DNA from: Macrostomum hystrix
Taxonomy: Eukaryota; Animalia; Platyhelminthes
DNA: 64,000 nt
Assembly (NCBI GenBank): GCA_950097015.1
Contig: CATNEN010000007.1
Span: 1 to 64,000 of the forward strand
Direction: 5' to 3'
How positions within the stretch are numbered: the first letter of the stretch is position 1; each line of letters opens with the position of its first letter. Made by a program: the position numbers and the translations under genes. The notes under the pieces were generated by a model that worked only from the letters and a program-made list of their open reading frames with translations, was not told the DNA's origin and ran no database searches. Shown here in pieces: positions 3,876 through 64,000 of the stretch.

Positions 3876-5098
3876 TCACAGGTCGATGCGGGCCACCTGA
3901 AGAAAGCTGAGGTCCTGCCTAGCCGAGTAGATCACAAATCGGTCCTGGCCGGGCACTGAAACATCGCTGCGCAGTGTCACGCTGATCTGGCTGCCGGCAT
4001 CCAGTGTGACCATGCCAACTGTCAGGCAGGTCAGCGGCCGCACTGTGCTCAGAACCCGGCCGGTGAACTTGGCCGAGCCGTCGACCTGTACGGTGCACTC
4101 GATACTCCGAGGCACGCTGACGTTGTGCATCCGGACCACCAGCTGGGCGGCCACATAGTACATGCCCGCCTGCAGCACCCGCACCGAGGTGTCGTCGGGC
4201 GTCACGGCGAAGGCGTCCTCTTGGTAGGCGTGCTTCGGCACCCAGGGCCGCACTGGGATGTCGTTTTTGTGCTCTGTAATAATGATAATAATAAATTATT
4301 ACACCTGCCACAATCGGGCCAGATGTGCTGCCGACTGAAGGCTGCGTACAGCTGTTCACGCAGGACGCCACACCCACCCTCCATCACCCCAGCTGATGCT
4401 GGTTCCCATTTAACAGCTGGGTGAACTGAAGCAAATCAGAGTTTGAGTGTCTTGCTAAAGGACGCAAATTGTTCCAGTGGAGTGGGGAATCGAACTCCCG
4501 ACCTTCAAGTCGTGAGTCCAACAGTCTAAACGCTAGGCTAAAATCCCCCTTGGGAAATTAATAAAAGGCAATTTCAGCACAAAAGTACATGCTTAATGAT
4601 CAGAGCAGTTTTCGATGGCGCTAAATTAATTACCTCTGCTCACGATGGCTCCCTGTCTCACTGTGCAGAAGAGACCTGGAAGTTGCCACCACACGCTGGC
4701 AACCTTTCTGAGCTCAGTCTCAGGGAGATCTGAAAATCAGATTTTTGAATCACTACAGATTGAGTCTAAATTATTGTAGGATTCCACACAGTTTTTGAGT
4801 ACTCCCATCTCAATCGCTCACCATTCGAGTCTCATCGGCGAGATGCTCGGATGAGTTCAACCAGCTGCTATTCAGCTTCGGATCGAATCGCTTCAGCCCG
4901 ACTGTTGTGCTGAAGGTGAGAACGCCGAGGACGCAGGCGGCCACCCGCTGCCGCAGCCAGAACTAGCCGGGAGTGCCTTCTCGCCTTGGACATGCGGACT
5001 TGACGACTGACTGTTGGCTTGGATGCAGCTGCTGGAGGCTCAACAGACTGAGCTTCCACTTGGAGCAGATGAGCATCGGGACTCGCCTCTTGAGACAT
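3876..5098 (-). pseudogene. TNF-like gene T1: type II membrane TNF-homology protein with two frameshifts in this sequence (pseudogene or assembly error)
   Basis: Exons 5098-4822, 4729-4634, 4273-3876. The last exon has VRVLQAGMYYVAAQL and ends SFLQVARI. Removing one G at 4944-4946 restores a TM helix (LVLAAAAVAACVLGVLTF). Adding one base at 4678-4679 restores the C-x8-C exon seen in paralog T2. TATA at ~5183-5191. Confidence 0.75.
4278..4550 (-). mobile_element. CORE-type tRNA SINE family B inside T1 intron 2
   Basis: CCCATTTAACAGCTGGGTGAACTGAAGC...GTGTCTTGCTAAAGGAC resembles the reverse complement of the MIR CORE. Reversed B and A boxes follow, with a (TTA)n tail. A second copy lies at 33085-33370. 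Confidence 0.7.
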
Positions 5099-21000: not shown

Positions 21001-22380
21001 GCATTACATTCAGGGTGGATGGCCGGAGTACTTACCGAAAGTCATGTTGCCTTACTCAAAAGGGAAGCTTGAGTATACTATTCAGAACGGTGTTGTGTTT
21101 AAAGGATTGCGGATCGTTCCACCCAGTGAATTACGAACGGAAATTTTACACCTGCTCCATGAAAATCATCCCGGAGTTGTGCGCATGATTCGTTTGGCAC
21201 GACAGTATTTCTGGTGGCCAGGAATCGACACGCAGATAAACTGCTTCGTTCGAAGGTGTGCACAGTGTCAGCTTCACGCAAGAAAGCGAACTAACTCCAA
21301 TTTATCCTCTTGGGAAGATGCGCAGACGTTCTTCGAGAGAGTACACGCAGACGTCGCGATATTCAAAGGACACCGATTCCTAGTGCTAGTAGACGCATTC
21401 TCGAAGTGGGCGGATGTTCGGCATATCGATTCAATGAAATCGCAATCTGTAATTCGGGCATTTCGACAAACATTTAATTACATGGGTCTCCCACAAACCT
21501 TGGTGACAGACAACGGTACAAATTTCACGTCCGCCGAATTCGCCACGTTCCTAAAGGAGAACTTCGTTCAGCACCTTCTGACTCCTCCAGGTCACCATCA
21601 GTCGAATGGGCAAGTGGAGCGGATAATAGAAGAGTTTAAATTTCATCTAAAGAAGTCAAACGCTACTTCTGACGCGGCTGAACTAGAGCGAATTGCAATC
21701 GCGTTCTGTCTGTTTCACAATACTACACCGCAATGCAATGGTTCTATTCCTGCTGGTTTGGTGTTTCTTCAACTGCCAAGAACTCGCTTGTCAAGAGTGT
21801 GCACTGACTGGATTCAACCTCGACTACAAGCCGAACCAGTCTTCATTCGTGTGGAACACAAGGAAGAGAGGGTTCCGTCAATGATTACTACTTCCGTCGG
21901 AACCAATACCTTTCGTGACGACAAGGGTCGGCTGGTACATCAATCGGATATTATACCAAAGCTTCATGACGTGACTGACGGATCTGATTCCGACCAGAAT
22001 CAAAAACCCGTCTCGGAGGAAAAAACTACCGACGTCACGGCTAATCAAGCTACGGAAACGGCGCAAAAACTGAGGCGGAGTTCTCGCCAACGTCGACCCC
22101 CTGATCGTTTGGGTTACTGACGTTTTTCAGCATCGGTGGGGGTGTTGCATATGCTGCATGCTATGCTGATTTATTTATAGACTTATTCTCGTCTAAAAGT
22201 AGTCTATGTGCCATTGAGGCAAAATGCTACTGTACATCTTGTTTGCTAGAAGCTTCAATGCCCCTTAAGGGTAAAGAAATATAACAGCGAGCTTTAGGCT
22301 CATGCCAACTTGGAGCTGCTCTAATAACGCTCTTCTGCAATTCACAAACCCAAGTGCCTTCGTGATCTTCAAACGTAACA
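18027..22380 (+). mobile_element. Full-length Ty3/Gypsy LTR retrotransposon (Mag-like architecture)
   Basis: 238-bp TG...CA LTRs at 18027-18264 and 22143-22380, with one mismatch seen. 5-bp TSD GATTG, PBS TGGCGACGAGG at 18265, purine-rich GGTGGGGGG tract before the 3' LTR. Confidence 0.97.
18332..22120 (+). pseudogene. gag-pol: gag-pol polyprotein interrupted by a single in-frame TGA at 20585-20587
   Basis: Two CCHC knuckles, protease LVDTGS, RT YQDD, RNase H (LTCDAS...IVWL*SRVLTPAE.NY..IERE), integrase HHCC and D-D-E. ORFs 18332-20587 and 20594-22120 are in the same frame. Confidence 0.93.
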
Positions 22381-22697: not shown

Positions 22698-23612
22698 TCA
22701 CGGCAGCCGCACCGCACGAATGTAGGTGCTGGCCTCAGTTGTCTGCAGCTCCTGCCGACTCAGCATCCGCAACTTCATCGTGACTTTGTCGCCAGCCCGC
22801 AGCGTCACCAGAATGTTCAGCTTGCAGACGAGGCTGACATCCGTGACAGCGGTGCCAGGCTCCGATTGCAACATCTCGTGCTCGCAGACGCGCCTACCGA
22901 TCACACCGTTGATGGCCAAGCCGCCGGACAGGTGCAAGTCACCCGAGCTGAAGCGAACGCGCGCGGCTGCGTCAACGATGTAGACGCTGTCGCGAAGGGC
23001 ACGGATGTGCCTCCGGTCGGGCGTCAGCTCAAAGTCCTCGGCCAGCTCGCCAAAATGCTTGAGTGGCCCCAGACTGCCAGCAGTCATGTATCGCCTGGCC
23101 TCCCAGCAGGGGTCGCCAGGGCATGCGCCGGTGTTGGACACGTCCAGAAAGAACTCTGACAGTCGGGCGCTCTGCGGCTTGTCCTGTCTGTGTGGGCTGC
23201 TCAATCGGCCGATCTGCTGCAAGTTTCGGACGCTGAGGGCCAGCGCAACGAGCGCGCAGGTCGCGACGGCCACGCCAGCGACGACTCCAAGGCGGGGCCT
23301 CCAGCAGCTTTGAGATGATCGTAGCCTCGAGGATGTGACACCTTCTTCTAGTCGGCATAGCTCCGTCGGGGTGACGCACTTCGATTCAAGTTCGCTGAAA
23401 TTATCCGTGATAGTTTCGGCTGAGCCATCCACTGCCTGGTGGGCCTTGTCGGTTACTCTCATGGCTGTGGCTGAGTTCTTGTGAGTTTGAATTTTAGCTA
23501 CCTTTTTTACGGCGCGTTTAAATTTTGTTAAAACGGACGCTTCCCCGATAAATCCCTGGATTGGCCCTGGCACAAGCCGTTGGCGACGTTCCTTATAGCT
23601 CGGTGCTGGCAT
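22698..23612 (-). CDS. TNF-like gene T3: intronless type II membrane TNF-homology protein (304 aa)
   Basis: Long N-terminal tail, TM GVVAGVAVATCALVALAL, domain with IRALRDSVYIVDAAARV, LRAGDKVTMKL and STYIRAVRL. Confidence 0.8.
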   Translation of the reverse strand: MPAPSYKERRQRLVPGPIQGFIGEASVLTKFKRAVKKVAKIQTHKNSATAMRVTDKAHQAVDGSAETITDNFSELESKCVTPTELCRLEEGVTSSRLRSSQSCWRPRLGVVAGVAVATCALVALALSVRNLQQIGRLSSPHRQDKPQSARLSEFFLDVSNTGACPGDPCWEARRYMTAGSLGPLKHFGELAEDFELTPDRRHIRALRDSVYIVDAAARVRFSSGDLHLSGGLAINGVIGRRVCEHEMLQSEPGTAVTDVSLVCKLNILVTLRAGDKVTMKLRMLSRQELQTTEASTYIRAVRLP

Positions 23613-23921
23613 GTACACGCGTGCGTAATCTATTTTTAGTTTTTTAGCATTCGGAATTTCCCTGGTACTTCCAATGGCCTTCTTGACTTCCTTCTAGTGA
23701 CTCAATTAAGAAGTACGTTTTTTAACACAAGGAAGTTTGCTTTGGTACAAGCAATGAGTCATGCTGATACTATTGCGAAAAAAATTCAAACAATTCTTTT
23801 TTGTAATAACAGCCTAGCATTCTTATCTACCCTAAAAGTGGACTAAGGATTGTAAAGAGTGGTAAAGCCTTCGTGATTTCCTCTAAACAATTGTGCTTTA
23901 ATGATCTCTGTATAGTATTTT

Positions 23922-25243: not shown

Positions 25244-26041
25244 TCATCCGATGCGGACCAGCCTTAGAAATGTACTCCGGGATGATTTCTGAACCATCTG
25301 CCGATTGTGCAGGTTCAGTTTGATTGACAGCTCATCTCCGGCCAGCAGTTTGGCGTATCCGCTGAGCTGGCACTGCAGAGTCTCCGACTGCAGCCCCAGA
25401 GACTCTGCTGGCAGCACGGGGAGGCGCTGGAGACAGTTCAGCACATCCATTTTTTCCAGATTTTTGGAGCTGCCCGCTTGCTGTCTAATGACCTCGATAG
25501 AGCCCTGCAGAGCCAGGCTGCCGGACTCGAAGGTCACGCGCACCTGAGCGTCAATGCCGAACACACCTGGACGCAGGATGCGAACCCGGCGTCGATCCTC
25601 GGTCAGCTGGAAGCAGCCAGCTTGGCTGGTTTGGTCTGTCTGGCGCAGCCGGCCCAGGCCAGTTTTGGTCATCATGTACTGCACGCCACTCAGGCACGGG
25701 TTTTCCAAGTTGCCTTCGTCCTCACATTTCTTCAAGGAAGATATGTCCAGAGCGAAAGCTGCGAATTGTGCCTGCGACTCGGCTGACTGCTGCTGCTGCT
25801 GCTGCATGGCCTGAAACAAACGTCTTCTTCCGCTGATATTGCCTTTGAGCATCTCGTCTAGGCCAGCCGGTGAGTTCCGGTCTCCAATGACAACAAGGCA
25901 GATGGCAACGAGGCCTAGCAGCAAGCCGGACCCAGCAGCGGTGGCAAGGCAGGCTTTGCGGCACGAGCCGGATCGCCTAGGAGCAGCGGAATTCACTTCA
26001 ATAGCTGACGGAGTCTGCACCAGAGGAAGTTCTTGAGACAT
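25244..26041 (-). CDS. TNF-like gene T4: type II membrane TNF-homology protein with an intronless CDS, EF-disulfide type (265 aa)
   Basis: TM GLLLGLVAICLVVIG. VRILRPGVFGIDAQVRV; NCLQRLP...QCQLSGYAKLLAGDELSI resembles the BAFF/EDA pattern; ends STFLRLVRI. Probable short 5'UTR intron (~26096-26045) and TATATA at ~26130. Confidence 0.85.
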   Translation of the reverse strand: MSQELPLVQTPSAIEVNSAAPRRSGSCRKACLATAAGSGLLLGLVAICLVVIGDRNSPAGLDEMLKGNISGRRRLFQAMQQQQQQSAESQAQFAAFALDISSLKKCEDEGNLENPCLSGVQYMMTKTGLGRLRQTDQTSQAGCFQLTEDRRRVRILRPGVFGIDAQVRVTFESGSLALQGSIEVIRQQAGSSKNLEKMDVLNCLQRLPVLPAESLGLQSETLQCQLSGYAKLLAGDELSIKLNLHNRQMVQKSSRSTFLRLVRIG

Positions 26042-30810: not shown

Positions 30811-33800
30811 TCAGGCGTAGCACAGTCTGGCAGCCAGCCTGGTGTTCTCAAGCTCCGCTGGTCCCAGAGGCCCGCCGCCCGCATTGTTAGGCCTGCCCAG
30901 CAGCAGTTCGCCGACTGGGAATCGCCGCAGGGGCCGCCGCCGTTCGTTTCGAGCGGCAGCCGGGTAGCCCAGGTGCAAGAACCGGTGAACGCCCAGCGTA
31001 TTGGAGGTGAGCCACTTCTCAGCCAGCTGACTGTAGCCGGATTGGCTCAGCTTGCGACAGGCAGCGAGCTTCAGCGGATTGTTTTCGCGGCTCTCTGACG
31101 CTCGGATGTGAAAATAATAGTTCTGATGCAACCGGTGGGATGCCGCTCGGCTTCCTGCCGGATTCAGGAGTCGCTCTGCGATGTGGTAATTTTGCACATA
31201 ACGAATTTCTAATTCGCGCACTTTAAGTCCAGCCAGTGGATATTTTTAGATCTGAGTGAGCGACTCTCAATGTACGTAGGTAATGTACTTTGGCTATTTT
31301 TAGATCTGAGTGAGCGACTCTCAATGTACGTAGGTAATGTACGCTGACTATTTTCAAATATGAGAGTGCAAATGGTAGTGTACATAGATTATGTTCGTTT
31401 GTTAATTTTAGATCTCATAGTCTTAACCTCATTGTACATAGGTAATGTACGCTGGCTATTTTTAGATCAGAGAGTGCAACTCGAAGTAAAGTTAGATTAT
31501 GTTCGTTGGCTTCGTTTAGATCTAGGAGTACAAATCGCAATTTACCATAGGTAATGAACGCATACATATTCTTTGTTTTAATGAGTTGTAAACAGACTGT
31601 ACAAATATGCGCTTATAGAACATTTGTGCGTAAAGCGGTGCTTTATACTGTTAAGCTACACTCGTAATATTTTACATTATTTTATCTAGCAGTTGATGTA
31701 AGTTATTGCTGGGAAAAGTACATTTGTAAAGCTTTTTTTCTTTGAAGACACATGAGATGCATTCAAATGTTTGAACTTACCACAGACAGACTTCAATAAC
31801 GCTGATCTATCCAACAATGGTGAGAACACACTCGGACTCAACAGTCTCAGGCGCTGACTCAAGTTGGGCGTCACGGAGCGGTACTGCTGGTACTGCTGAG
31901 TCAGGTAGATGGGCCCCGTGGAGCTGATTATGTCTTCAACTGTAAGGCAGGATAATTAACACGCGATAAAATCCATTATCTGCGTGACTTGTACAGAAAG
32001 ATATGCTATTAGCAGCGATGACTCATCGCCAGTCGATGGCGTGGGGTGGGTGTCGACGAAATCGTGATAAGGCATCAACCAATTGGAGAAAAGTGAACTA
32101 TTTTTAGACTGCTAAGTGCTAATTCATACCGTTTTTCTTGCTAGGCAGGTTCTGTATAACTTGCTCCAGAAACGGATGCCTCTTCGTACAGCCGATGACA
32201 GAATTCATGACCGAGTACTCGATGCCGTGCAGAATTTGAGTCTGCTCCGGGCGTTCTTGATCGAAGAAGCAGGTCTCAGTGGCCACAAGGGAGTCTAGCG
32301 GTTGTATGCAGTGCACGTCCATGTCTATGTACACACCTGCCATGGACAAGGAAACAACGAATCAAAGAAGGACATTGACCATCAACTTCGCCGTGAAAGG
32401 TAGATATTACTTTTAATTAAGTGTTTACCAAATCTACTTTTTATTAAGATTTGTAATGATTTAAAAAAACTAAATTTATTATTCGCAGTAACTGACAGTA
32501 AGAGATAACCCCAGAGATAAGGAGAAGGCTGAAGGGTAAAAGGAATGAGGACGGGTCAGAGGGTAAGAGCTGAAAAGGAGGGGGTGAGGAAAGAGAGACG
32601 AACAGCTAGCCAATCAGAGGCGAGGGAGAGGAGAGAGGAGAAAGTACAATAAGAGGTCACGCGAGCGTGAACTAACACAGAGAGATCAAGGAAAAGTAAT
32701 AACAAGACTTAAAGCGCTACAAGACGCGTACATTTGAATGTACTTTAGTGTACATATTAACGCATCGAATGTTACATTGGAGTGTAAATTCGTGCAAAAA
32801 GTAACTGAAATGTACATCAAAATCACAATGAACATTTTAATGAATCAGCGCCATAACGCATGACTATTAAGAGTATTAAGAGTAAGGCACACACAGTTTT
32901 TCCGATGCAATTCTTTTGTTGTAGGAAAAATCAAAGAAAAATGTTGTGGGTGGTGCCACATGCTAACAAGGGCCTCTGTCTACTATACAAATCTACTGTG
33001 CAGCATGCAACACTTGCCACTGTAAATAAGGTAGAAATGCCCACAGAATATTTTATTGAATAATTCATGGAATGCTTCATTTCAGTACGCCTGCCCAATC
33101 GGGCCAGATGTGCAGCCGACAGCACAGCCGCAGCTACTGCGTGGCACATCTGAAGGCTGCGTACGGCTGTTCAGTCCATGGACTGGAAGGACGCCACACC
33201 CACCCTCAATTACACCCGCTGATGCTGGTACCCAATTAACAGCTGGGTGAATTAAAGCAATGTAGAATTAATTGTTTTGCTAAAAAGCATAAACCTTGAC
33301 AGTGGAATCAGGATTCGAACCCCCCGACCTACAATCCGTGAGTCTAAAGCTTCAGCCACTAGGCTACAACCTCCTTTGCCTGCATGAATCATTCACACAA
33401 TGGCTCATACAATGGCTCATACAATGGTTCATACAATGGCTCATACAATGGCTCATACAATGGCTCATACAATGGCTCATACAATGGCTCATACAATGGT
33501 TCATACAATGGCTCATACAATGGCTCATACAATGGTTCATACAATGGCTCATACAATGGCTCATACAATGGCTCATACAATGGCTCATACAATGGCTCAT
33601 ACAATGGCTCATACAATGGCTCATACAATGGCTCATACAATGGCTCATACAATGGCTCATACAATGGCTCATACAATGGTTCATACAATGGCTCATACAA
33701 TGGCTCATACAATGGCTCATACAATGGCTCATACAATGGCTCATACAATGGCTCATACAATGGTTCATACAATGGCTCATACAATGGCTCATACAATGGT

Positions 33801-34756
33801 TCATACAATGGCTCATACAATGGCTCATACAATGGCTCATACAATGGTTCATACAATGGCTCATACAATGGCTCATACAATGGCTCATACAATGGCTCAT
33901 ACAATGGCTCATACAATGGCTCATACAATGGTTCATACAATGGCTCATACAATGGCTCATACAATGGCTCATACAATGGCTCATACAATGGCTCATACAA
34001 TGGCTCATACAATGGTTCATACAATGGCTCATACAATGGCTCATACAATGGTTCATACAATGGCTCATACAATGGCTCATACAATGGCTCATACAATGGC
34101 TCATACAATGGCTCATACAATGGCTCATACAATGGCTCATACAATGGTTCATACAATGGCTCATACAATGGCTCATACAATGGCTCATACAATGGCTCAT
34201 ACAATGGCTCATACAATGGCTCATTGAACTCACCGCCGAAGTGGTGCAGTATGAAGTACCTCAGTGCGTCTGACCTCTGCAGAGCCTTCTTATAGCCGTC
34301 AAACATTGGCAGGAAGTCCGCATAGTTCGCTTCAACAAACTTCCTGGCCTCCGAGTCTGTCCACAGGACGTAGACAAAATCAGGATTTCGGCGAATGCAG
34401 GAGGCGATCGAGTGGCGATACAGCTCCGGCACGATGTCGGTGGCATAGATCTGGTGCAGCAGCAGGGGAATCCTGCCATCGCACTGGCCCGTCAGGTTCA
34501 ACCGCCCAGTGGAGGCTCGCCTAGCCGCGGCCAGCTGTCGTATCCTGGCGTCGACATCCGGGTCTCCGGTCAGCTCGAGCCAGACCGGCTCGTCCCAGGT
34601 GAAGTAGATCCAGCCGCGGCTGACCGCGACCGTTAGGAGAAGCAGCAGAAGAGCGAGCAGCAGCGGCGGAAACAGGGAGACTGCGCAGGTCGGCTGGCCG
34701 AAACCGGGGCCGCAGCAGCAGGCGCGACGATGGAGGCTGCGGCAGAGCAGCCGCAT
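30811..34756 (-). CDS. GT32-family DXD glycosyltransferase (SUR1/Och1/A4GALT-like), type II membrane, ~417 aa
   Basis: Exons 34756-34234, 32336-32130, 31939-31781, 31175-30811 (last acceptor less certain); 1254 nt open. Motifs IPLLLHQIY, YVLWTD, SDALRYFILHHFGG|VYIDMD, HPFL, STGPIYLT. Confidence 0.88.
31243..31550. repeat. Degenerate ~55-60-bp tandem duplications in glycosyltransferase intron 3
   Basis: TTTTTAGATCTGAGTGAGCGACTCTCAATGTACGTAGGTAATGTAC occurs twice exactly, then as diverged copies. Confidence 0.7.
33085..33370 (-). mobile_element. CORE-type SINE family B, second copy
   Basis: Aligns by eye to 4305-4550 (AATCGGGCCAGATGTGC...GGACGCCACACCCACCCTC...GCTGATGCTGGT...CAGCTGGGTGAA), with reversed B/A boxes. 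Confidence 0.75.
33396..34224. repeat. 12-bp minisatellite (ATACAATGGCTC)n in glycosyltransferase intron 1
   Basis: Direct inspection, ~69 units, starting ~10 nt inside the donor. Confidence 0.97.
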
Positions 34757-40617: not shown

Positions 40618-43365
40618 TCAAAGGTGCGACTCCACGGTTGAAATAGTCGATATGACGCAGCAGTTACAGCCGCTGCCTATCTCGCCTATGGGCCGCTGTC
40701 CTGCCGATCTGTTGCGCGACGCAACAAAGTCCGCGTAGAGAGCGCGCACAATCTCGCCGGTTACGATGTGGCCGCAATTCAGTCGGATCATCCACACAAA
40801 GAACAGGCCGTCGATGCGGATAAAGTCGGATTCGAATTCGTTTAGGTTTTCCTGCGTGCGGTTTTATGAGTGAAGACATGTACACTGAGGCAAGGGTAGG
40901 AAGGGAAAGGAATCACTGGCTCCATTTACAAATGTACACTGAGGCAAGGGAAGGAAAGGAAAAGACTCGCTGGCTCCATGTACAAATGTACAAAGGGGCA
41001 AGGGAAGGAAAGGAAAATAATCGCTGGCTCCATGTACAAATGTACAAAGGGGCAAGGGAAGGAAAGGAAAAGACTCGCTGGCTCCATGTACAAATGTACA
41101 CTGAGGCAAGGGAAGGAAAGGAAAAGACTCGCTGGCTCCATGTACAAATGTACAAAGGGGCAAGGGAAGGAAAGGAAAAGACTCGCTGGCTCCATGTACA
41201 AATGTACAAAGGGGCAAGGGAAGGAAAGGAAAAGACTCGCTGGCTCCATGTACAAATGTACAAAGGGGCAAGGGAAGGAAAGGAAAAGACTCGCTGGCTC
41301 CATGTACAAATGTACACTGAGGCAAGGGAAGGAAAGGAAAATACTCGCTGGCTCCATGTACAAATGTACACTGAGGCAAGGGAAGGAAAGGAAAATAATC
41401 GCTGGCTCCATGTACAAATGTACACTAAGATCAGAGAAGAAAAGCAATCGGGGGTGGAGCCAGCCTGTGCCTACAAACCTCATTTTGTACGTTTTCCTGA
41501 TAGCCACAGCCCTTGATGAGTGACCGTAGGCACTCGCGCCGACTGCAGGCCAGTGTGAATCTGCGCAGCCAGGTCAGAACGCTGGTGGCACTGACCACGG
41601 TCGCAATCGTAAAGTAGAACCACAGGATGATGTAGACCTTCTCAGTGAAGATGTTCGAACTCATGGTGCAGTAGGTTGTGGCGCTATTAACACTCGTGAG
41701 ATCCTGATATGACAGGTGACACACTCCGAGCCTAGATAAACATAGATTATAGATGACTGTGGAGCATTGTAACAGACCAGCGGTTAGAAGAAAGGAGAGC
41801 TGGAAAGCAGCAGAACTGAGGATGTCGGGAACTGGGAATAAGGAGAGGGAGGAGTCGAGAAAAAAATGGGTAAAATAAAAGAATGGAATTTTAAAAGAAT
41901 GGAAGAAGGGAAAGAATTAAAGATGGGAGAGGGGAAGAATCGATAATGGGGAGAGGGGAAGAATTGATGATGTGGAGAGGGGAAGAATTGATGATGGGGA
42001 GAGGGGAAGAATTGATGATGGGGAGAGGGGAAGAATTGATGATGGGACGAGGGGAAGAATTAGGGAATAAGAAGGATAGGGTAGAAGAGTGGAATGGGAA
42101 AGGGGAGTGCAGTATAACAGTCGGTGCATCTGTCTCACCTGGGCAGCACCATGGTAACTTCCCAGTCGAGTCCCGTGGTGATGTTTCTCAACAGGTCAGC
42201 TCCAAAGGACAGCGAGTCGAAGCCGAGAAACTTTCTCATGAGCTCCAGCTGCAGCACCAGTACAGTCAAGCCGACTAGCTTTGTTGCCAGGTACATGACG
42301 AAGGTGTAGTTACCGAAGCGCTTGCTAACTGGGCACCATGGCAACCGCCGGTGCAGTGCCGTCGCCCAGTCCACCAGTTTGCCGCGCCGGTATTCGCGCG
42401 TAGCTAACAGCAGGTCCTTGAGGCAGCTGGTCAGCTCGCCGACTCTCTCAGCCCGCTTGCCCGGCGGCAGAAGCGATGCCTCTCTAGCCGAAGCGGCGAT
42501 GAAGGCCAGGTGAGAGGCCGGCCGGCTGAAGCAGAGCAAGTCGAACAGGGCCTTCGGTAGGTAGGAGAGTAGAGCTTGGATGCCAAGCAGCAGGGGCACC
42601 CACAGGTAGTAGCCTGCGGTGTTCATTTAAAACAGCGTGGTCGCTTCAGTTCTCAACGATTCTCAATTTATATCGACAACCTGTCCATCTCACCTGTTCA
42701 TTTCTGCTGTACTCTCAGTCTATCACACATTCGCTCTAACTATCCCTCATTTCACTCGTTATCCTAATTTATCCCATTATCCTCATCAGCTCCTTATCCT
42801 CAAATCTTCTCCATATCCCTCGTTTCACTCCTTATCCTCATTTCTCTCCTTATCCACCATGACTCTCCTTATCCCCCATTTCTCTTCTTATCCCCATTTA
42901 TCTCCTTATCCCCATTTCTCTCCTTATCCCCATTTCTCTTGATCCTCAATTTCTCTCCTTATCCCCATTTCTCTCCTTATCCCCATTTCTCTCCTTATCC
43001 CCATTTCTCTTAATCTTCAATTTCTCCTCACAATCCCACTCACGAATGACAATGTGGTTCTTTCTGAGCCATTGTTCATTCACATAGGGCAGTTCGTCGG
43101 TCATGCGGAGCGGGTAGACGCCGGTCACCCAGCAGTAGCTCTCGATCATCTGAGCGTCCATCATGGTCAGTGGCGTGAACGGCTTGTGCAGCAGCATGCA
43201 GGATATGGGCTTGGTGAAGTACTCCTTGGCGCCGATGACCAGACTGCTGACCAGCAGAACAATGCCGCTTAGAAGGAATGTGACCCGATCGCCAAAGTCC
43301 AGCAAAGCGGCTGGTGCCAGCAGGCCGGAGCTGCGAACATAGTCGAAGAATTTGAAGATCGTCAT
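40618..43365 (-). CDS. inx: Innexin (gap-junction/hemichannel protein), 427 aa
   Basis: Exons 43365-43044, 42613-42139, 41731-41479, 40851-40618; 1284 nt open. Motifs DFGDR, KPISC, ESYCW, IR|YYLWVP, LPR|LGVC...YC...NIFTEKVY, FIRIDGLFFVWMI. Confidence 0.93.
40878..41428. repeat. 54-bp minisatellite in innexin intron 3, ~10 units
   Basis: Unit GTACAAATGTACACTGAGGCAAGGGAAGGAAAGGAAAAGACTCGCTGGCTCCAT. Confidence 0.95.
41935..42065. repeat. 24-bp repeat (ATGGGGAGAGGGGAAGAATTGATG)n in innexin intron 2
   Basis: Direct inspection, ~5 units. Confidence 0.85.
42860..43030. repeat. 18-bp repeat (TCTCCTTATCCCCATTTC)n in innexin intron 1
   Basis: Direct inspection. Confidence 0.85.
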
Positions 43366-47553: not shown

Positions 47554-50500
47554 TTAAGAAGCCTTTGACAAGTGCTGCTGCTGCTGCTGCTTGCTGATGA
47601 GGGCCAGGGGGGCCATGAGGCAGATGGCAGTAACCCGGTGGAAATAAGCCACGAAGGCAAACACCAGAGCCAGGTAGGCCGCAATGAGGCTAGCCAGGAA
47701 CAGGTCAAACAGAGCCGGTTTAACAATGTGCACACTGAGCACAGAGTCCGCTGAGTCGTAGATCACAACCTCCGGCTCCTTCTTGTCCGGCCGAAACGTG
47801 GCCAGCCGGTAGTCTCGCACAAGCGGAGACAGCATGCTCTGCAGGGTCTGCACGTAGGCGTCCGAACGGCGCAAATTGTGATAAGCCCTATGATCGTGCT
47901 CAAGCAGTTGAGCATAGCTGCGCCAGTTCGATTCGGCATCTTCGGCTGAGCCAGCGGAGTCAATGTCAGCGTACACGTGCCGCATCATCTGTTCGTCGGT
48001 GACATTGGCCACCGGATTAAGCAGCAGATCCAGGAGAGACTTAGCCACGGCGCGATAGTTTGAGTCTAGCTGGCGCCAGTCGATCCGACGGTCGAGCAGG
48101 CTGAGCCGGTGCGAGCAGTCTGCGTGGGTGGGGCACTGGCTCAGTGTCAGGCCTGGCAGGCGCTTGATTGAGAATCTCTCGTGCTCCCAGGGCAGCCACT
48201 CGTTAGCCAGGTTAATCTTCTTCTGGCGCAATTGCACCTGTCACATGGAATATTGTTCACAATTGATTCTTAACTATAATTTATAACTGCGTGTGAGATT
48301 CGAACTCGCGGACTGTCTTTTACTTATTTGCAGGAACGGCATGCCGACGAACTAGGCGGGAGTCGCCCATCGCGCCATCTGGACCCCTGAAAACAGCGTG
48401 GAAGGGGCGGCAGCCGGAGTGCCTCTCACCCCAGGCCCGCACACGCACAGAGCTGACCAAACCAGGTGAGGACTTAGATGCCTGAAGGGTTGGGACGAGA
48501 GGACCAAGCCACGCGCGCAGACGGCTGGTCAAACCTCGCCGCTCAGAGCACGCATGGCTGGTGCACACCCGCCCCACCCCCCATACAACGCCTCACACCC
48601 GGCCCAACGCACAAACACAAACACAAACAAGCAGGCATGCAGAAGGCAAGGGTTAAGCTATTTTTAATTAGCTTTGGTTGCACAAAATAAGGTGCATCTC
48701 CGCAAGTCACTACTTCGCAAACCTCCAACTAAGCCCCGAAATAATCGTGACTTGGAGGGAGGAACGAACCAGCGACACTAGCCGCCGACCCACTCACCCC
48801 CTTCGCGGACTGTCACGGTTAGATAACAAAATAAAAATAAAAAAACATAACTAACGCGTTTGCCTCTCGCACTAAAGTCCCTGAACTCGATTCCGCGGCG
48901 AGGCCACATTAACTTGCGCTGCTGCCTCGGAGAGAATTGGCTTGGGGGCTTGTAGCGCAATTTTATAGACCCTTAAAGGGGCCAACCTCCGAGGCCCAGC
49001 AAAAGTGCACTCTGCCTGACGATGAGAAAGTCGGGTCAGATGTACACACCTGTATGTACACCTGGATGTACAGAACATGATGTACCAGTGCCCGGAGCCC
49101 TTCTGAAAATATTATTATTATTATTACGCAACTAACGGGATATAAACTGAAGCTCGCAACATAGTGGGTAATAATGTTATAATAATTTGCAGGTGACACT
49201 AGACCCGCAGCCAGCGAGGAAGAATTTCTGCCTATTTCGCTGACTCCTGAGCACACACGCACACAGATACTGTACGCAGGCATACGCTCACACAAGTGTG
49301 TACATCTGCCCTGACTTTCTCATTGTCAGTCAGCGTACACTCTCACTGTGCCTTGGAGGTTGGCCCTCAAGGGCGTAGATCGCACGACAAGCCCCCAAGC
49401 CTTCTCTCCGCTGCTGCGCCTCAAATAAATGCGGCCCCCAGCCTAGTGGTTAGATTTTTTAATACTCAAATTTGAGACGATGCTCACAGTATCGGGTTGG
49501 TCGGAGTGCCGACGCAATCTCTCGTAGAAGGAGTGCATCAGGCTACCCTCCTTGGGCAGTTTGCTGACGTGCAGATTAACAGCCGGCTGGAGGCCCACGG
49601 ATTCCAGGCACAGGGCCATGGCAACCCGGCTGAGCACAGCCGAATCGGCCGATTCCAGATTCTCTTCAATCCATCGCTTGGTGCCGAAATAGGACAGCTT
49701 GCCGCCGCTGCTGAGAAGGAACAGGACGCTGTACTTCGGCCTGACGCCCGGCATGCTGTAATAATAGGACAGCAGGCGAGCCAGCCGCAGCAATAGCAGC
49801 ATGCCACTGCCGTTGCTGTCAAAGCCGCGGCCGAGGGTCGGCGCGGAGCCGAACCAATCAATGTAGGCCGACATCACTATAGTGCCATCGGCGCTTTGGT
49901 GCCCAGCTGAGCCAGCACCTCCAGCGGCTGCGGCGGCTGCAGCGGCGGCTTCATTGCCGGACGACATTGGCGAAGCTGGCTGAGGATGCAGAAATCCGTG
50001 CATAGCAACAAACTCTAGGCTGTCAATCGGTTTGCTCTGGGCAGCCCTAGCAGCCAAATGGTAGGTATTGCCCAGCACGGAATTAACTATTAGACGAATT
50101 GGCGAATTGAAATCGTTCGACTGATCAATGCGACGCATGTCATCGAAGACTCGACCGAAATCTGGCGTCTCCACTAGGAAGTAGACAGGAATCGGGACAT
50201 TGTCGCCCCACAGATCCTGTTAGGTTGGGAATTACAAGTTCGAAGTGAAATCTTTGCCGTTCTGTTTCTTAGAATTCAAGCTTTTATTATAACAAAAATG
50301 GAATTTATTTTCTCACCTGCTCCAGCGAGTGCAGCGCAGTACGCACTTCGTCCGTCTCGGCCCCGGCCGCGGCGGAGGAGCTGTTCAGCAGCTCCGGTGG
50401 CAGCAGGATCAGAATAGCGCCGACATTGTCCTGGACTAGGCGCCTGATTACTGCGCCAGACAGCTCCTGCGGGTGGGGCGGATGCGTGAGATCCCGAAAT

Positions 50501-52543
50501 GAGGATCTGCGAATGCCGAAATCTCAAAATCAAAGACCTGATAATTTAATTAGTACTCCCAACTTTAGGATCTGGGAACGTCTTAATCCCAATAAAAGGG
50601 TCTAAGAGTAGGGTTATCCCAACTTGAGGATCTGGGAACGTCTTAATCCCAATAAAAGGGTCTAAGAGCAGGGTTATCCCAACTTGAGGATCTGGGAATG
50701 TCTTAATCCCAATAAAAGGGTCTAAGAGTAGGGCCTCAATGCCCAACTTGAGGATCTGGGAACGTCTTAATCCCAATAAAAGGGTCTAGTAGTAGGGTTA
50801 TCCCAACTTGAGGATCTGGGAACGTCTTAATCCCAATAAAAGGGTCTAAGAGTAGGGTTATCCCAACTTGAGGATCTGGGAATGTCTTAATCCCAATAAA
50901 AGGGTCTAAGAGTAGGGTTATCCCAACTTGAGGATCTGGGAATGTCTTAATCCCAATAAAAGGGTCTAAGAGTAGGGCCTCAATGCCCAACTTGAGGATC
51001 TGGGAACGTCTTAATCCCAATAAAAGGGTCTAGTAGTAGGGTTATCCCAACTTGAGGATCTGGGAACGTCTTAATCCCAATAAAAGGGTCTAGTAGTAGG
51101 GTTATCCCAACTTGAGGATCTGGGAACGTCTTAATCCCAATAAAAGGGTCTAAGAGTAGGGTTATCCCAACTTGAGGATCTGGGAATGTCTTAATCCCAA
51201 TAAAAGGGTCTAAGAGTAGGGCCTCAATGCCCAACTTGAGGATCTGGGAACGTCTTAATCCCAATAAAAGGGTCTAGTAGTAGGGTTATCCCAACTTGAG
51301 GATCTGGGAACGTCTTAATCCCAATAAAAGGGTCTAAGAGTAGGGTTATCCCAACTTGAGGATCTGGGAATGTCTTAATCCCAATAAAAGGGTCTAAGAG
51401 TAGGGCCTCAATGCCCAACTTGAGGATCTGGGAATGTCTTAATCCCAATAAAAGGGTCTAAGAGTAGGGCCTCAATGCCCAACTTGAGGATCTGGGAACG
51501 TCTTAATCCAAATAAAAGGGTCTAGTAGTAGGGTTATCCCAACTTGAGGATCTGGGAACGTCTTAATCCCAATAAAAGGGTCTAAGAGTAGGGTTATCCC
51601 AACTTGAGGATCTGGGAATGTCTTAATCCCAATAAAAGGGTCTAAGAGTAGGGCCTCAATGCCCAACTTGAGGATCTGGGAATGTCTTAATCCCAATAAA
51701 AGGGTCTAAGAGTAGGGCCTCAATGCCCAACTTGAGGATCTGGGAACGTCTTAATCCCAATAAAAGGGTCTAGTAGTAGGGTTATCCCAACTTTAGGATC
51801 TGGGAACGTCTTAATCCCAATAAAAGGGTCTAAGAGTAGGGTTATCCCAACTTGAGGATCTGGGAACGTCTTAATCCCAATAAAAGGGTCTAATAGTAGG
51901 GTTATCCCAACTTGAGGATCTGGGAATGTCTTAATCCCAATAAAAGTGTCTAATAGTAGGGTTATCCCAACTTTAGGATCTGGGAACGTCTTAATCCCAA
52001 TAAAAGGGTCTAAGAGTAGGGTTATCCCAACTTGAGGATCTGGGAATGTCTTAATCCCAATAAAAGGGTCTAAGAGTAGGGTTATCCCAACTTGAGGATC
52101 TGGGAATGTCTTAATCCCAATAAAAGGGTCTAAGAGTAGGGCCTCAATGCCCAACTTGAGGATCTGGGAATGTCTTAATCCCAATAAAAGGGTCTAAGAG
52201 TAGGGCCTCAATGCCCAACTTGAGGATCTGGGAACGTCTGAATCCCAATATAGACTCCAAAAGGTAGTTAATCCAACCTATATTTTTCGGTTCGTAAAAT
52301 GAGATAGTCTATTCTAACCAGAGGATCCGTGATTATTGATAAGATTGATAATAAAACGCTTATCAAAGCTAGATACTGTGGCACGTCTCACCTGAACCCT
52401 AGCCACCACGCATTTTCTATTCAACTGTCCCGAGCCTATAGTCCTAGCTTCAAAGTTGAGTAGGGCGCTGCGACTTCCATAGCGGGAGCCAAACATGTCG
52501 AACTGGTGCAGACGGTAGATGGGCACATCGGAAACTGTAGCCA

Positions 52544-52577
<34 letters not shown>

Positions 52578-52712
52578 AGTGGCAGCTTCCTGACCGGCCA
52601 GTTGGCAGCGAGTGGGCGCCACCAGCAGCACAATCGATAGCAGGCAGATGAGCGAAGCTGGCGTGAAACTGCGAGCCAGGTCTTCGCAGAGATTTGCCAA
52701 GTCGTGAATCAT
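47554..52712 (-). CDS. NCLN: Nicalin (inactive M28-like ER translocon component), 627 aa
   Basis: Exons 52712-52392, 50466-50317, 50216-49488, 48237-47554; 1884 nt open. Motifs YRLHQFD...YGSR, GFDSNGSG, LFLLSSGGKLSYFGTKRW, QKKINLA...WEHERFS, VKPALFDLFL followed by a TM helix. Confidence 0.95.
48852..49126 (+). mobile_element. SINE family A copy (5'-truncated) in nicalin intron 3
   Basis: Matches 3070-3290 and ends in (ATT)n. Confidence 0.8.
49170..49440 (-). mobile_element. SINE family A copy, inverted relative to 48852-49126
   Basis: The reverse complement matches 3120-3400. Confidence 0.8.
50553..52245. repeat. 60-bp minisatellite with a 64-bp variant in nicalin intron 1; 244/248-bp higher-order period
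   Basis: Unit GGGTTATCCCAACTTGAGGATCTGGGAACGTCTTAATCCCAATAAAAGGGTCTAAGAGTA, ~28 copies. Confidence 0.97.
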
Positions 52713-55534: not shown

Positions 55535-57714
55535 TATGTCTGTTTTTATTATACAGTTCTCATTTTGCTCACTATGCTAAGGTAATTTTGCTAGGGTAAA
55601 AGTTTACTAGGGTAAAAGTCTATGGCAAATATTAGCCACCAATATTTTGATAATCTCAGGGACAATATTTTTGTCTTAGTCTTGTTTTGAAAATAATAAA
55701 TAAGTTTAATAACTAAAATATAAGCCAAAAAAATATGAACTTGTACAACTTTCACCAAGTAAATTATAAAGCAACACAGTTTTCATTTTTAAGACTTCAG
55801 AATAACAACTAGACATCAGCAGCTCTTAAGGCCTTAATATAAACTAAAAGATTGCAGCTCCAAAAAGTTCAAGATATTCTATTTGGACTAATTTCCAAAT
55901 TTCCAACCTGAAAACAAGCCATCAGCAACGTAAGTGGCATTGGCATATGGTGACTGTCTGTCATTGGGAAATAACATAAGAAGCCAATCAACACAGCAAT
56001 ATCTGAACAACTAAAGACTCTAACCACTTGAAAGCTTGAAATTGTTAATTTAATGGGAGATGAGTTAAAAAAAAATTGTGCCTATTTGTGTTAACTAGTA
56101 GGCCTATTAGCATTGATTAGGAATTAATTCAAAATTTAATTTCACTCTGTAGACTGTAGTTAGCCTTCTTAATCTGAATACTGATAGTGAATTCGGAGGT
56201 TCGATCCTCATCTTCGTGTGGTGTGATGACGTAGATTAGCGAGCATTATAATTATTGTCGTTCTGTTCGGATGGAAAACTGACCATGTCGTCGGTTGCAG
56301 CGGGAAAATAAGCTGATTAACGTAACTAGAGATTGGATAATAATATTAAAAAGCTTTATATAGTGGAATAGGCTTACTAAAAGTCAAGCTTCGTTGATTC
56401 AAAGCTCTGTGGTTCTCTAATTTCTTTCTAGTATTTTAACAATAGACACAATCACACTCAACTACACAACAAGAGAGCCATGTAAGGGAGAGATCTTGGT
56501 CCGAATAACAAAATAAGTCGCAGCAGCAGTAACTAAAAATTAATTGGCAATTAATTAAAACAAGAGACACTCTCTCAAAGGTGTGCGCATGCAGTTAGCC
56601 TACCTAATAGTGTTTGCTCTATCTAATTTAGTTATAGACAAATTAAAAGTAAATAATAAAAATGACGCTACAGAAAGCGAATTCCATAAACAACCCGCAA
56701 AATGACACAAAAGTTCCGATTCAACTGACTGTAAAAATTTCTGTTAACATGTTACATAATACAATATAATGGTACCAACAACATTGCAAGGTCACTATAT
56801 TATTACGAATAAAAAGCTGCTAGGCCTAATGCTAAATCCAAAATGTTTTTTTTTCGACGAGTCAGTCAGTCAGTTAGTTTTCCCTCTTTAAAAATCAAGC
56901 TTAGCAGAAGACAAAATGATGAGCCAAAAGCCTGATGTAACTAATTTTAGCTACCAAGCCCGTCACCAATCATGCGCTTTTTAACCTGATTGAGTGGTGC
57001 ATCCTAGTAGCGAAATACGAAGCAAACAAAACTTGCATCACCAAAATGTAAAAAAATCGTATTGTAACTTTCAGCTGGTTATCGAGCAATATTTGTCTAG
57101 GAACATATACTACATAACATTTATGTCTTGGTGAATAAAGACAAGGAATATTGTTATCGACTCATCATAAACTATCCATTAAGTTCTCGATACAGACTGG
57201 CTTCAAGGACGATATTAGTAGTTAGTAGTAGTGCAGTTCAGTAGTAGTACTTGGTATAGTTGAATAGTTAGTAGATGGGAACACAAAGACACTTTCTTTG
57301 TCTTAGTCAGTCTATTATTTAATCAACTATAAATATAGCGAAATCATAATGCTCTTGCATACACATTACTGCATGCTTACTTAGATTTGTCTGCATCTAT
57401 CAATCATGACAGGGAAACCTTATAAGCATGCTATTGATGTTAGCTTATTTCAAGCTTGTGTACCACTAAGGGCATGTAAAATGCTTGCCTAGGCCTAATC
57501 GACACAAAATAGAGAAAACGAAATAATTCATTAAAATTTGGGCTTTTGTGATGCCTTCCTCAGAATTTATTTAGTTCAAATTAGACAACGTGTGGATGCC
57601 ATGATGAAATAATTAAGATCAAAAGCAAGTAGAACGTTTGAAGAATTGTCATTCTGTCGGCAGTCAAACAGAAAGTCTTCCACTACCTTTTAACCCTTTC
57701 AATATTAGTAATTT

Positions 57715-58180
57715 TCACTCATCATCTTCATCCTCCTCATCGTCGTCGTCATCATCCTCATCCTCCTCCTCATCATCGTCGTCATCATCCTCATCCTCCT
57801 CATCATCGTCGTCATCATCCTCATCCTCCTCATCATCGTCGTCATCATCCTCATCCTCCTCATCATCATCGTCGTCATCATCCTCATCCTCCTCATCATC
57901 GTCGTCATCATCCTCATCCTCCTCATCATCATCGTCTTCATCATCTTCATCCTCCTCCTCATCGTCGTCGTCATCATCCTCATCCTCCTCATCGTCGTCG
58001 TCGTCATCTTCATCCTCCTCCTCATCGTCATCATCATCATCCTCATCCTCCTCATCATCGTCGTCATCATCCTCATCCTCCTCATCATCATCGTCGTCGT
58101 CATCCTCATCCTCCTCATCGTCATCGTCATCATCTTCATCCTCCTCCTCATCGTCGTCGTCTTCGGCTTCTCGTTCGTCC

Positions 58181-58215
<35 letters not shown>

Positions 58216-59291
58216 CTCATCATCATCATCATCATCCTCATCCTCCTCATCATCGTCTTCATCATCTTCATCCTCCTCCTCATCGTCGTCGTCATCATCC
58301 TCATCCTCCTCATCGTCGTCGTCGTCATCTTCATCCTCCTCCTCATCGTCATCATCATCATCCTCATCCTCCTCATCATCGTCGTCATCATCCTCATCCT
58401 CCTCATCATCGTCGTCATCATCCTCATCCTCCTCCTCATCATCGTCGTCGTCATCCTCATCCTCCTCATCGTCATCGTCATCATCTTCATCCTCCTCATC
58501 ATCATCGTCGTCATCATCCTCATCCTCCTCCTCATCATCGTCGTCGTCATCTTCATCCTCCTCATCATCATCGTCGTCATCATCCTCATCCTCCTCATCA
58601 TCATCGTCGTCATCATCCTCATCCTCCTCCTCATCGTCGTCGTCGTCATCCTCATCCTCCTCATCATCGTCGTCATCGTCGTCATCATCCTCATCCTCCT
58701 CATTATCATCGTCGTCATCATCCTCATCCTCCTCATCATCATCGTCGTCATCATCCTCATCCTCCTCCTCATCGTCGTCGTCGTCATCCTCATCCTCCTC
58801 ATCGTCGTCATCCTCGTCATCTTCTTCTTCTCGTTCGTCCTCGTCATCATCTTCATCCGCATCAGCTTCCCTGTCATCCTCGTCTTCGTCGGCGTCCCTG
58901 TCGTCCTCGTCGTCATTTGCGTCTGAATCGCGCGCCATCGCCTCCTCTTCGTCGTCGCTATCGTCACCCGCCGACCGCATCAGAGGAGCATCGTCGGTTT
59001 CCCGCTTGGAACTTAGAGCAGTCTCGGGCCTTTGGCCTTGGGGCAGCTGTCATGATGAATCAGGTAATAGGATGAAGGAGTAAATTTACACAAGACCACT
59101 ACACATGCATCTCAACTCTGATCTGATCTCATTGGTTCAAACGCTATAATGCCTCGGTTTGACCTCCATGCCATCACTCGCAATCGTATTATTTGAAAAT
59201 AAAAGTATGACAAATCAAAGTCTTGAGCATGAAAATAACTCACCGCCGAAGCGACCGCAATGGCCAGTAGCAGCAGAAGTAGAAGCCTCAT
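57715..59291 (-). CDS. Secreted, extremely acidic Asp/Glu-rich protein (459 aa)
   Basis: Exon 1 59291-59244 = MRLLLLLLLAIAVASA then GTGAGT. Exon 2 59046-57715 after a GACAG acceptor, in frame: LPQGQRPETALSSKRETDD... then ~400 mostly D/E residues. TATATAAA at ~59394-59401, AATAAA at 57571-57566. Confidence 0.85.
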
Positions 59292-59364
59292 AGTGCAAAC
59301 GTGTCGCTAAACTTGAAAATTATCTGTTGCTCAGAAGTGAACTCAGAAGGTCCAGAATTCTTGG

Positions 59365-59401
59365 TTGTTCCCTGACCAGACTTGACAGTCGAGTTTATAT
59401 A
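59365..59401 (-). promoter_or_regulatory. TATA-containing core promoter of the acidic protein gene
   Basis: The minus strand reads GCCTATATAAACTCG about 100 nt upstream of the ATG, with no intervening ATG. Confidence 0.6.
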
Positions 59402-60689
59402 GGCTAGCGATCAGACTATCAGGCAGCGTGAGCCGACCCACCGCAGCTGCTGAGCTCTTCCACCTGCCGCTGTCGTCAGCGTCTTCTTACTTCGCCAACT
59501 CACAAGCTTTGGAGTCAAACGAGCAGTTCTTTATTGTTTGCGCATGACAACATTGAGCTGGCGAGCTGATCTGCTGACGTTATTAACTTTGTCTATTATC
59601 CGGATTTGATTTTACAACCCTAGATAAGTTTTTTATTTTTAGAGAATGATTTAAACAAATATTTCTGATATTATAAGATTTCCAATATTTGTTTTGCCGT
59701 CGGCAAACATGCCAATTTTCCTTGTTAAGGTAAATATAAATTGAGACACCTGCCGAAAAAGCAAATTTCACAATTTCTACATTGATTTTCGCCAAAGTGT
59801 TTTTGCAACGTCAGTAGCCAAGGAACTTTAATGTGTTCTTTCTTAGAATGTTCATTGTCTATCTGTTCCAATGCGCTTGATGCGGTTCCTGACGTAGGCA
59901 GGCACCACCATCAATAGCCACATATGAACCATGGCTTGAAATTTCACACAAATTGCGTTTATCTCTGAAATTCAATGTGGCACATGTCCCTGTACATGTA
60001 GTTGAGTGATTTGGAACTAGCTCGCACCGGCGGGACACAATGACGGTGAGGTATGAGTAGACCAGGCCCATGAGCTAAGATCTGCGATGCGTCACTCCTG
60101 CAGCCACCTTTTGAGCAGGTTTTTGCAGCTAGTAGGGTGCCTTGTGCCTCCCAGCGCAGAAATCCCTCAACGCTGTCCCTTCCAATGGGTACAAACTGGG
60201 TCAGTTTAAGCGCTTGATGGGCGTTGCCTCGGACCTCTCACCTGAGTCTTAAGGTACATCTGGCTACGGCTCTAAGGGAAAGGTATCACATTTCCACCTT
60301 AACAGTATATGCGACCAGTCCGCAGCGTTCGCCCTACCTGTGCGTGATCAGGTGCCTCTGGTTTCGGCTCTGAGGGAATGGTGTCACTTTCTGACCTTAC
60401 AGGGTTAAAGTACAGGTTTTGACCTTACAGGTACAGGTACGCAGCTTGCTGCTGGTTTTCACCATACCTGGCTGGTCTCATCATCTATGGCCTCTACTAA
60501 TGCCAACTGTGAAACTGGTACTGAAGCTCCCTCCCCATGAACCCGGCCTCCTTCGGGAACCGCCACCGCGGTGGAGCACCTCGCGCCGAGCAGAAAGACG
60601 TCTGGACCCTCGGCAACAGACGCCTCTTCTTCTCGACACCGCAAGCAGGGCGCGCTGAGGATACGCCAACTGACAATGCGGCCGCTACC

Positions 60690-62476: not shown

Positions 62477-64000
62477 ATGCCGTGGGGTTTCCAAACGTGT
62501 GGTCCTAATGAGGCCCTTGTTATTTCAGGCAAGTACTAGCTATTTTTAAATGATTTACTGTTTAGCTACTGTCCTGAATGAAGTAGGCCCCTAGTTTTTT
62601 ATTACCAATTTTTTTGATTTCGGCAAAAGTTTATTTAGATTAGGCCTCATTATCTAGCTATACTTGACTGTATAATACATGTTCGTGCTGACAGTGGTTG
62701 TTTAGCTTGCTAGCTAGTCATTTTTTATTAATTTTAGTAGGGCCTAAACTATGTTGGCCTATCTAGTATTTACTATTCAGTGAGGGCCACTGCTTTCGCT
62801 GCGGTTCGATTGTCATCAATTACATTAGTATGTCAAAAGTAGGCATCATTAGCAATTTTTTCTGTTTCTTGTGCTTTGATAATATAGCTCAAATAGTGTT
62901 GAGTGATTTGTAACTTTTTTCTCTTGTCAACAAGTTTACATACTATTAGCATTTTACATGTATATATTCTACCCACCTACATTGAGTATTAGGTATGCCA
63001 AGAATTCAGTGTGAGTTGTGACCAACCATGTACACCGAATTTGGCAGGCTGAATTTTGGGCATATAAAACAGATCCAAACTATGGGCTAGAGTTGGCTAG
63101 AGTTTTAAGTAACATTTTAAGTAAATTTCTATAAGTAAGTAAAGAAATTTGGGACAGTTAGCTATTTAATGTGACATACTTATTATATAGCTTTACTCAT
63201 TATCACATAGAAAAAATGATTTAATGGCTTAGGCTAGGAACTAATGAACACAATATATATTCATGATTATCTAAGACATTAATTATTGCTATATTTCTGT
63301 ATTGCTTTTTGCTTTTGTGAATATTTCTGCTATACATGCATAGACCTCTATTTATTTTAATAATAAAAAAGAAAAATACACTTAACCATAAGAATGTTTT
63401 GTATGTTAAATTTTCTACTAATCATTATATTATTTACATTGTTAGCACTTGTTTACATAGACTATAGTCACAATATTATTAGAAATTTCTTTTTTAGTAT
63501 CTTATTGCTATGTTAAATTCAACTATATGTTGTGTGTGACATATGTTATAGTTATATGTGATTGATAACATGTGATTTTGTATTGTTATTAAGAAAATGA
63601 TAATGGTAGTTATTTTTTAGTGTCTAACTATTCAGATCTGGTGATGTCATTTTTTGGGCTACATTTAATGAATGTTTATTACAATTTAGTCAATTGACAA
63701 TTATATAAATTTATATTTCAATGTCTTTTTTTGCCTATCAAAAAACAGGCTGTTGCCATGGCAAGCCCATGTACATACCTGGCGGCAGGAAATTTGTTCT
63801 GCCTGGTATTCAACAGGTGCAACGCATCTCCCTGAACACCATGACCATCACAATTGAATCGCCAAGAATCTACACTCAGCTTGGCGTGCCAGTGACAGTC
63901 ACCGGCGTGGCTCAGCTGCGCATCAAGGGCCAGAATCAGGACATGCTGGCGGCCGCCTGCGAACAGTTTTCTAGGAAAAACTGAGCACGAAATCACCGAG
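62477..64000 (+). CDS. FLOT1: Flotillin-1, 5' part (exons 62477-62528 and 63749 to window end)
   Basis: MPWGFQTCGPNEALVISG|CCHGKPMYIPGGRKFVLPGIQQVQRISLNTMT...GVPVTVTGVAQ...MLAAACEQF. GC donor (GCAAGT) at 62529. One extra T at 63967-63970 shifts the frame; its removal restores FLGKTEHEI. Confidence 0.93.

Follow-up and report, generated by a model that had tools for sequence, protein, structure and literature searches.

The poly-Asp/Glu tract, which resembles a triplet repeat in the DNA, is a real spliced gene on the minus strand of the 64-kb window (the whole stretch of Macrostomum hystrix DNA analyzed, 64,000 nt). Its two joined exons are translated into a protein of 459 amino acids with no internal stops. 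The features of the gene are as follows, all on the minus strand.

59394..59401, minus strand: TATA box (TATATAAA), identified from the sequence, ~30 nt above a predicted transcription start near 59371
59292..59352, minus strand: 5' UTR, minimum extent from transcript contigs, with no upstream ATG
59244..59291, minus strand: coding part of exon 1 (ATG at 59291, 16 codons), from translation, hydropathy and contig cover
59047..59243, minus strand: intron of 197 nt, phase 0, GT-AG (GTGAGT...GACAG), with the joint present in four of four runs
57715..59046, minus strand: exon 2, terminated by TGA, from translation
59002..59046, minus strand: putative pro-peptide, residues 17-31, with a dibasic Lys-Arg (KR) at its end (residues 30-31; 59007-59002)
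58831..59001, minus strand: graded acidic region, residues 32-88, from composition, with a 27-nt period found by TRF
58917, minus strand: polymorphic site in codon 60 (Asn to Asp), from contigs of runs X1 and X2
57718..58830, minus strand: near-pure Asp/Glu array, residues 89-459, from translation and repeat analysis
57715..57717, minus strand: TGA stop immediately 3' of the array
57566..57571, minus strand: candidate AATAAA polyadenylation signal, from the sequence only

The original prediction had described a two-exon gene with a signal-peptide exon, a phase-0 intron, a pro-region ending in KR and a stop, and each of these elements was found in its expected place. The TATA box and AATAAA signal that it named are also present. 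The TATA 8-mer occurs only four times on both strands of the window, whereas the AATAAA hexamer, which starts at 57571 (~143 nt past the stop), occurs 120 times, so only the former is informative by itself. Exon 1 encodes Met-Arg, a Leu/Ala/Ile/Val core and an Ala-Ser-Ala terminus that falls exactly at the exon end and the GT donor; it is a predicted signal peptide with a cleavage site that would follow the -3/-1 rule. Two further in-frame AG acceptors (59022 and 59004) were not used in the transcript contigs. The plus strand of the array contains a 481-codon poly-Ser open reading frame and a His/Pro/Arg frame. Both are mirror frames of the GAN codons and were ruled out by the spliced joint, which reads CT..AC on that strand.

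The window contains several other genes and repeats. Approximately 5 kb downstream of the polyanion gene and on the same strand, the region 49443-52712 shows a weak match to Peptidase_M28 and presumably represents a nicalin-like gene. Exons of an innexin gene were identified by Pfam at 42135-43365 (minus strand), and an open reading frame at 63721-63984 (plus strand) resembles a flotillin exon by inspection. Five mutually similar open reading frames (27-39% identity) are located on the minus strand at 3876-4253, 10441-10839, 11321-11770, 22698-23618 and 25244-26041. Two of them have a hydrophobic stretch ahead of the domain, the four scanned produced no Pfam match, and one weakly matches a TNF-ligand chain (E 0.043); these proteins are possibly divergent TNF-like ligands. 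The open reading frames of a Gypsy-type LTR retrotransposon (18332-22120, plus strand) are split over several frames and include, by inspection, a zinc knuckle, protease, reverse transcriptase and integrase. At 10879-11319 (plus strand), a 12-bp repeat (10907-11201) is translated into Pro-Thr-Thr-Glu units with 20 of 30 mismatches at one codon position, and this may be a coding mucin-like exon. At 33389-34756 (minus strand), a glycosyltransferase-like exon continues in frame into a 12-bp satellite generating a long false open reading frame, an illustration of how common open satellites are here. A short interstitial TTAGGG array is present at 511-560.

Transcription of the polyanion gene was analyzed using eight public sequencing runs from two studies. 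Each run contained 31-40% of the sampled words of the interval 58850-59450, as expected from the exons without the intron. Contigs of four runs were placed on 58870-59900 with one spliced contig per run, and all four, representing both studies, carry the joint 59046/59244 with 197 nt skipped (CT..AC on the plus strand). Reads across this junction had been proposed as a check of the original prediction; the exact joint was recovered, and a spliced transcript exists. The contigs of these four runs include none covering the intron and none extending upstream of 59352, with 5' ends at 59352-59337. This joined, intron-less form ending below the TATA box is what an mRNA gives, with run types that are not recorded as RNA, and the contigs are uninformative on expression level, strand and true transcription start. 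Contig cover of exon 2 reaches only to 58870, and the length of the array rests on the assembly. One substitution, shared by runs X1 and X2, changes Asn60 to Asp. Run X2 (record 3) also contains a second contig of 229 nt, placed at 58874-58916, whose fitted and loose parts encode a tribasic Lys-Lys-Lys followed by an acidic run and have an RDADE unit in common with the gene. This contig possibly derives from a sister gene or from another organism or species in that run.

The array comprises 371 codons, 368 of which are GAN, making it 99% Asp/Glu. It consists of 33 units, mostly of 10-12 residues, with EEDEDDDDDD being the commonest (16 copies); at the DNA level there are 21 distinct units and one duplicated four-unit block. 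Comparison with the 33-nt consensus revealed 65 mismatches, 63 of them at codon position 3. A spanning tree of 18 distinct units, which omits two long units containing all three non-GAN codons, required 15 synonymous changes, two Asp/Glu swaps, nine whole-codon indels and zero changes at codon positions 1 or 2. The array copies share ancestry, and slippage where GAT meets GAC can imitate changes at the third position, so that a binomial value calculated for this bias is an overstatement; the bias is strong nevertheless. With nearly all variation confined to codon position 3, these results support the view that the gene is spliced, transcribed and protein-coding and that there is selection for Asp and Glu. 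The original prediction had based selection on a tract of ~1.25 kb and ~400 residues varying only in multiples of three. None of the 16 indels in the array is indeed frameshifting, but this is not distinctive: triplet slippage keeps the frame anyway, and indels are wholly absent from six of the 12 satellites that served as controls in the window. Thus, the claim of selection on the protein holds through the codon-position pattern and not through the indels. The acidic units were likewise confirmed, but the pure tract is shorter (~1.11 kb), residues 32-88 being graded and punctuated by Arg.

Removal of the signal peptide and pro-peptide would leave a product of 428 amino acids with a mass of 50.8 kDa (~51 kDa) and a net charge of -396. 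It contains 269 Asp and 134 Glu (63% and 31%, ~2:1), and with 94% Asp/Glu over 428 residues it is, to our knowledge, among the most acidic secretory proteins. The charge density of this chain (7.8 meq/g) equals that of poly-gamma-glutamate (7.75), and the chain is poor in nitrogen (12.3%). Cys, Tyr, Trp, Phe, His and N-glycan sites are all absent and Ser/Thr are few, a composition that rules out a DOPA-type or phosphoserine-type glue chemistry. The array has no Ser or Gly and one Arg in 371 residues, and the protein lacks KDEL/HDEL, a membrane anchor and a cysteine tail. In charge-hydropathy space (H 0.13, net charge per residue 0.93) the chain is far inside the unfolded region and is predicted to be unfolded. 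An ideal Donnan estimate produced 6-14 bar at 100 mg/ml. The KR site has no Arg at position -4 and no Gly amide donor, and its sequence suggests a PC1/PC2-type rather than a furin-type site. Residues 32-88 can be divided into five segments that are 9-15 residues long and have a single Arg at their end, and Asp/Glu content rises along them from 33% to ~78%. They look like older, diverged repeat units, and the single Arg residues may represent monobasic cleavage sites.

Protein searches were performed exon by exon using exon 2 or its parts, whereas the 16-residue exon 1, being too short for a database query, was compared within the window, where neither it nor the flanks of the gene has a second copy. 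Short queries and composition filters limit the meaning of blank searches of this kind. Residues 1-48 of exon 2, at two candidate lengths, gave no matches (short queries with limited power), and a search with the whole exon 2 was blank, which is uninformative given its composition bias. No match was found by phmmer among 1.84 billion representatives, in Pfam or in metagenome contigs, and the best ESM Atlas score (0.76) is at chance level. Thus, the database searches made revealed no homologue, and a literature search on Macrostomum lignano and aspartic acid-rich proteins found no published description of the gene.

By analogy with other secretory systems, the gene may encode an unfolded, convertase-trimmed polyanion that forms the matrix of regulated secretory granules in some type of gland cell. 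We give this reading, the most likely of those considered, a probability of about 45%; it corresponds to the gland or rhabdite granule component suggested in the original prediction. A signal peptide combined with a non-furin dibasic site and no retention signal points to regulated secretory granules, and the absence of an anchor, Cys, Tyr, His and N-glycan sites is consistent with this role. The signal peptide would direct the chain into the ER, and a PC1/PC2-type convertase would cut at KR, removing residues 17-31 in the maturing granule. The unfolded chain of ~51 kDa with ~400 carboxylates could then be condensed for dense storage by Ca2+, acid pH or cationic cargo such as basic peptides or K/R-rich proteins. 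On exocytosis, counter-ions would exchange for Na+, and the matrix would swell and disperse, hydrating the secretion and freeing its cargo. A ribosome-made chain would thus take the role played elsewhere by chromogranin, heparin, sulphated GAG or poly-gamma-glutamate. Polyanion matrices that cage cargo and swell on release by Donnan exchange are a general mechanism of secretory granules (PMC8482096), and poly-gamma-glutamate, with its equal charge density, is the osmotic matrix that drives nematocyst swelling (PMC9205923). Planarian rhabdites likewise swell and stain as polyanions (PMC5450325), and Aspein, whose architecture is similar, condenses with Ca2+ in simulations (10.64898/2026.06.03.729799). 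The second contig of run X2, with its Lys-Lys-Lys and acidic run, also speaks for this reading. The gland may be of the rhabdite/rhammite, mucus, prostate or adhesive-system type. Prostate glands make many secreted proteins (PMC5977470), and a seminal-fluid location falls within the granule-matrix reading. The data establish the gene, its splicing and its selected composition; we infer secretion and KR cleavage from the sequence, Ca2+ binding from the composition, and also the cell type. Several points count against the granule matrix: a lone KR can exist unused, the searches made found no homologue of known function, and the polyanion of planarian rhabdites is sulphated GAG and not protein (PMC5450325).

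The original prediction had also named the protein a candidate for a negatively charged releasing factor that would counter the cationic adhesive protein. It is unlikely that the protein is this factor, which belongs to the duo-gland adhesive organ, or its source. The whole chain or Arg-bounded acidic peptides would mask the K/R regions of the cohesive protein ap1. Heparin and fondaparinux block attachment, whereas cations or K/R peptides block release (PMC6410801), and the factor is still without identity in PMC6410801, PMC9229212 and PMC6745481. The net charge of -396 suits a strongly negative factor, and secretion is predicted. With one Arg in its 371-residue core, a factor of this kind would be missed by tryptic proteomics, and a dilute polyacid with 12.3% nitrogen could appear protein-poor in element analysis. 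The published model predicts a small, negatively charged molecule, and the releasing vesicles are reported to be PAS-positive and protein-poor (PMC6410801). The product here is ~51 kDa, although the Arg-bounded 9-15-mers could provide small anions for release. The releasing vesicles are ~70 nm wide with low protein density, and their PAS (polysaccharide) staining speaks against a protein with no N-glycan sites and few Ser/Thr. In a broader form, Macrostomum would have a class of gene-encoded poly-Asp/Glu chains that are processed by convertases and tend to be concealed by repeat masking, by the composition filters of HMMER and by proteomics based on trypsin. This gene or one of its sisters would then provide the K/R-rich glue with its anionic releasing agent or with a counter-ion for storage. 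We regard this form as speculative and rather improbable. If it were true, reversible underwater adhesion would become a genetically tractable polycation-polyanion switch.

It is rather unlikely that the protein enters the secretory pathway only to be kept in the lumen of the ER/SR (for example, in muscle), storing Ca2+ or metal there as a high-capacity, low-affinity buffer like aspolin, HRC or calsequestrin. Judging by composition, ~400 carboxylates could bind ~200 Ca2+. Such a store is favoured by aspolin, which likewise has a signal peptide and a short pro-region, and by calsequestrin, which is kept in place despite lacking KDEL. The composition of the chain fits as well, with aspolin, a fish muscle protein, reaching 96% Asp (PMC13665004). 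On the other hand, the dibasic site suggests post-Golgi processing, and the chain has neither a folded or Cys-rich retention domain nor KDEL/HDEL. It is doubtful that the protein regulates minerals or ions outside the cell, acting on CaCO3 or phosphate precipitation or buffering cations and water in the egg capsule, cement, epidermal coat or gut lumen. We know of no mineralised structure in Macrostomum, and the protein is Glu-rich (Asp and Glu mixed 2:1) and without Ser-Gly spacers, whereas Aspein is nearly Glu-free and has them, making the biomineral role raised in the original prediction weak. The four-part plan of Aspein and an Aspein/Asprich-like chemistry are nevertheless present, and an ion regulator could help in brackish water, M. 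hystrix being a brackish species (PMC8621496). A peptide-hormone-type precursor is very unlikely; here an active 13-residue peptide following the signal peptide, or the Arg-bounded peptides, would be the product, with the acidic tail serving as a spacer that has expanded and assists sorting. Prohormones normally have this layout, in which a signal peptide is followed by a peptide, KR and an acidic spacer. However, 371 selected Asp/Glu codons far exceed what a spacer needs, there is no amidation signal, aromatic residue or Cys, and the 13-residue peptide had no match in the searches made. Finally, a transcribed repeat without a functional protein would agree with the lack of a homologue and with read cover ending at 58870, short of the array. 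This is extremely improbable, as the splice joint puts the signal peptide in frame with the sole Asp/Glu frame, the other two minus-strand frames of the exon 2 region carry 2 and 174 stops, 368 of 371 codons are GAN with variation at position 3, and the only variant seen turns Asn into Asp. The rest of the probability belongs to roles outside the readings named.

A repeat-like tract is thus an expressed gene for an extreme polyacid in a soft-bodied animal without a skeleton. The gene bears on two questions: what the releasing substance is in flatworm temporary adhesion, and what packs and swells the granules of flatworm glands. Both are directly testable, since RNAi and in situ hybridisation work in Macrostomum and a specific probe can be made from the 330 nt of unique sequence at the 5' end. 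Should the product turn out to be an ordinary granule protein or calcium buffer, the addition to a known kind would be modest.

The protein appears to act like known secreted acidic disordered proteins, but it is a member of none of these groups and has a sequence match to none. As in Aspein and Asprich of the bivalve prismatic layer, a signal peptide precedes a long, Asp-rich disordered tail. Its likeness to Aspein extends to a short, less acidic N-terminal part, an Asp-Ala-type stretch, a long repetitive acidic tail and a length of ~400 residues. Asp accounts for 60.4% of Aspein and Glu for 1.5%, with the Asp arranged in SG(D)n blocks with Ser-Gly spacers; Aspein is predicted to be fully disordered and undergoes Ca2+-driven condensation in simulations (10.64898/2026.06.03.729799). 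In the Macrostomum protein, by contrast, Glu (31%) accompanies Asp (63%) and there are no spacers. This protein contains KR and comes from a host without a shell; no homology to Aspein or Asprich was found in its N-terminal region (exon 2 residues 1-48, short queries with limited power). With aspolin, HRC and calsequestrin it shares an extreme acidic tract behind a predicted signal peptide. The His-rich repeats, Cys-rich tail and thioredoxin-fold domains of the HRC/calsequestrin type are absent (no His or Cys and no Pfam match) and are not known from the shortest aspolin either, and the protein is about twice as long as aspolin. It also differs from aspolin by its patterned Asp/Glu units, and no homology was detected; aspolin is a poly-Asp protein of muscle that has been reported from fish alone and promotes iron-mediated TMAO demethylation. 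The granins (chromogranin/secretogranin) are likewise acidic and have a signal peptide and dibasic sites. They are about a quarter acidic compared with 94% here, and the Macrostomum protein has one dibasic site instead of many and no granin Pfam match. A granule-matrix role has been proposed for the granins (PMC8482096). Nematocyst poly-gamma-glutamate and the sulphated GAGs of planarian rhabdites are equal or similar to it in fixed-charge density, and the physics proposed for their swelling is the same, but they are made by enzymes, whereas the protein described here is a gene-encoded, alpha-linked chain. Secreted acidic disordered proteins were already known; what is new is that an animal without mineralised structures has a gene for an almost pure polymer of Asp and Glu.
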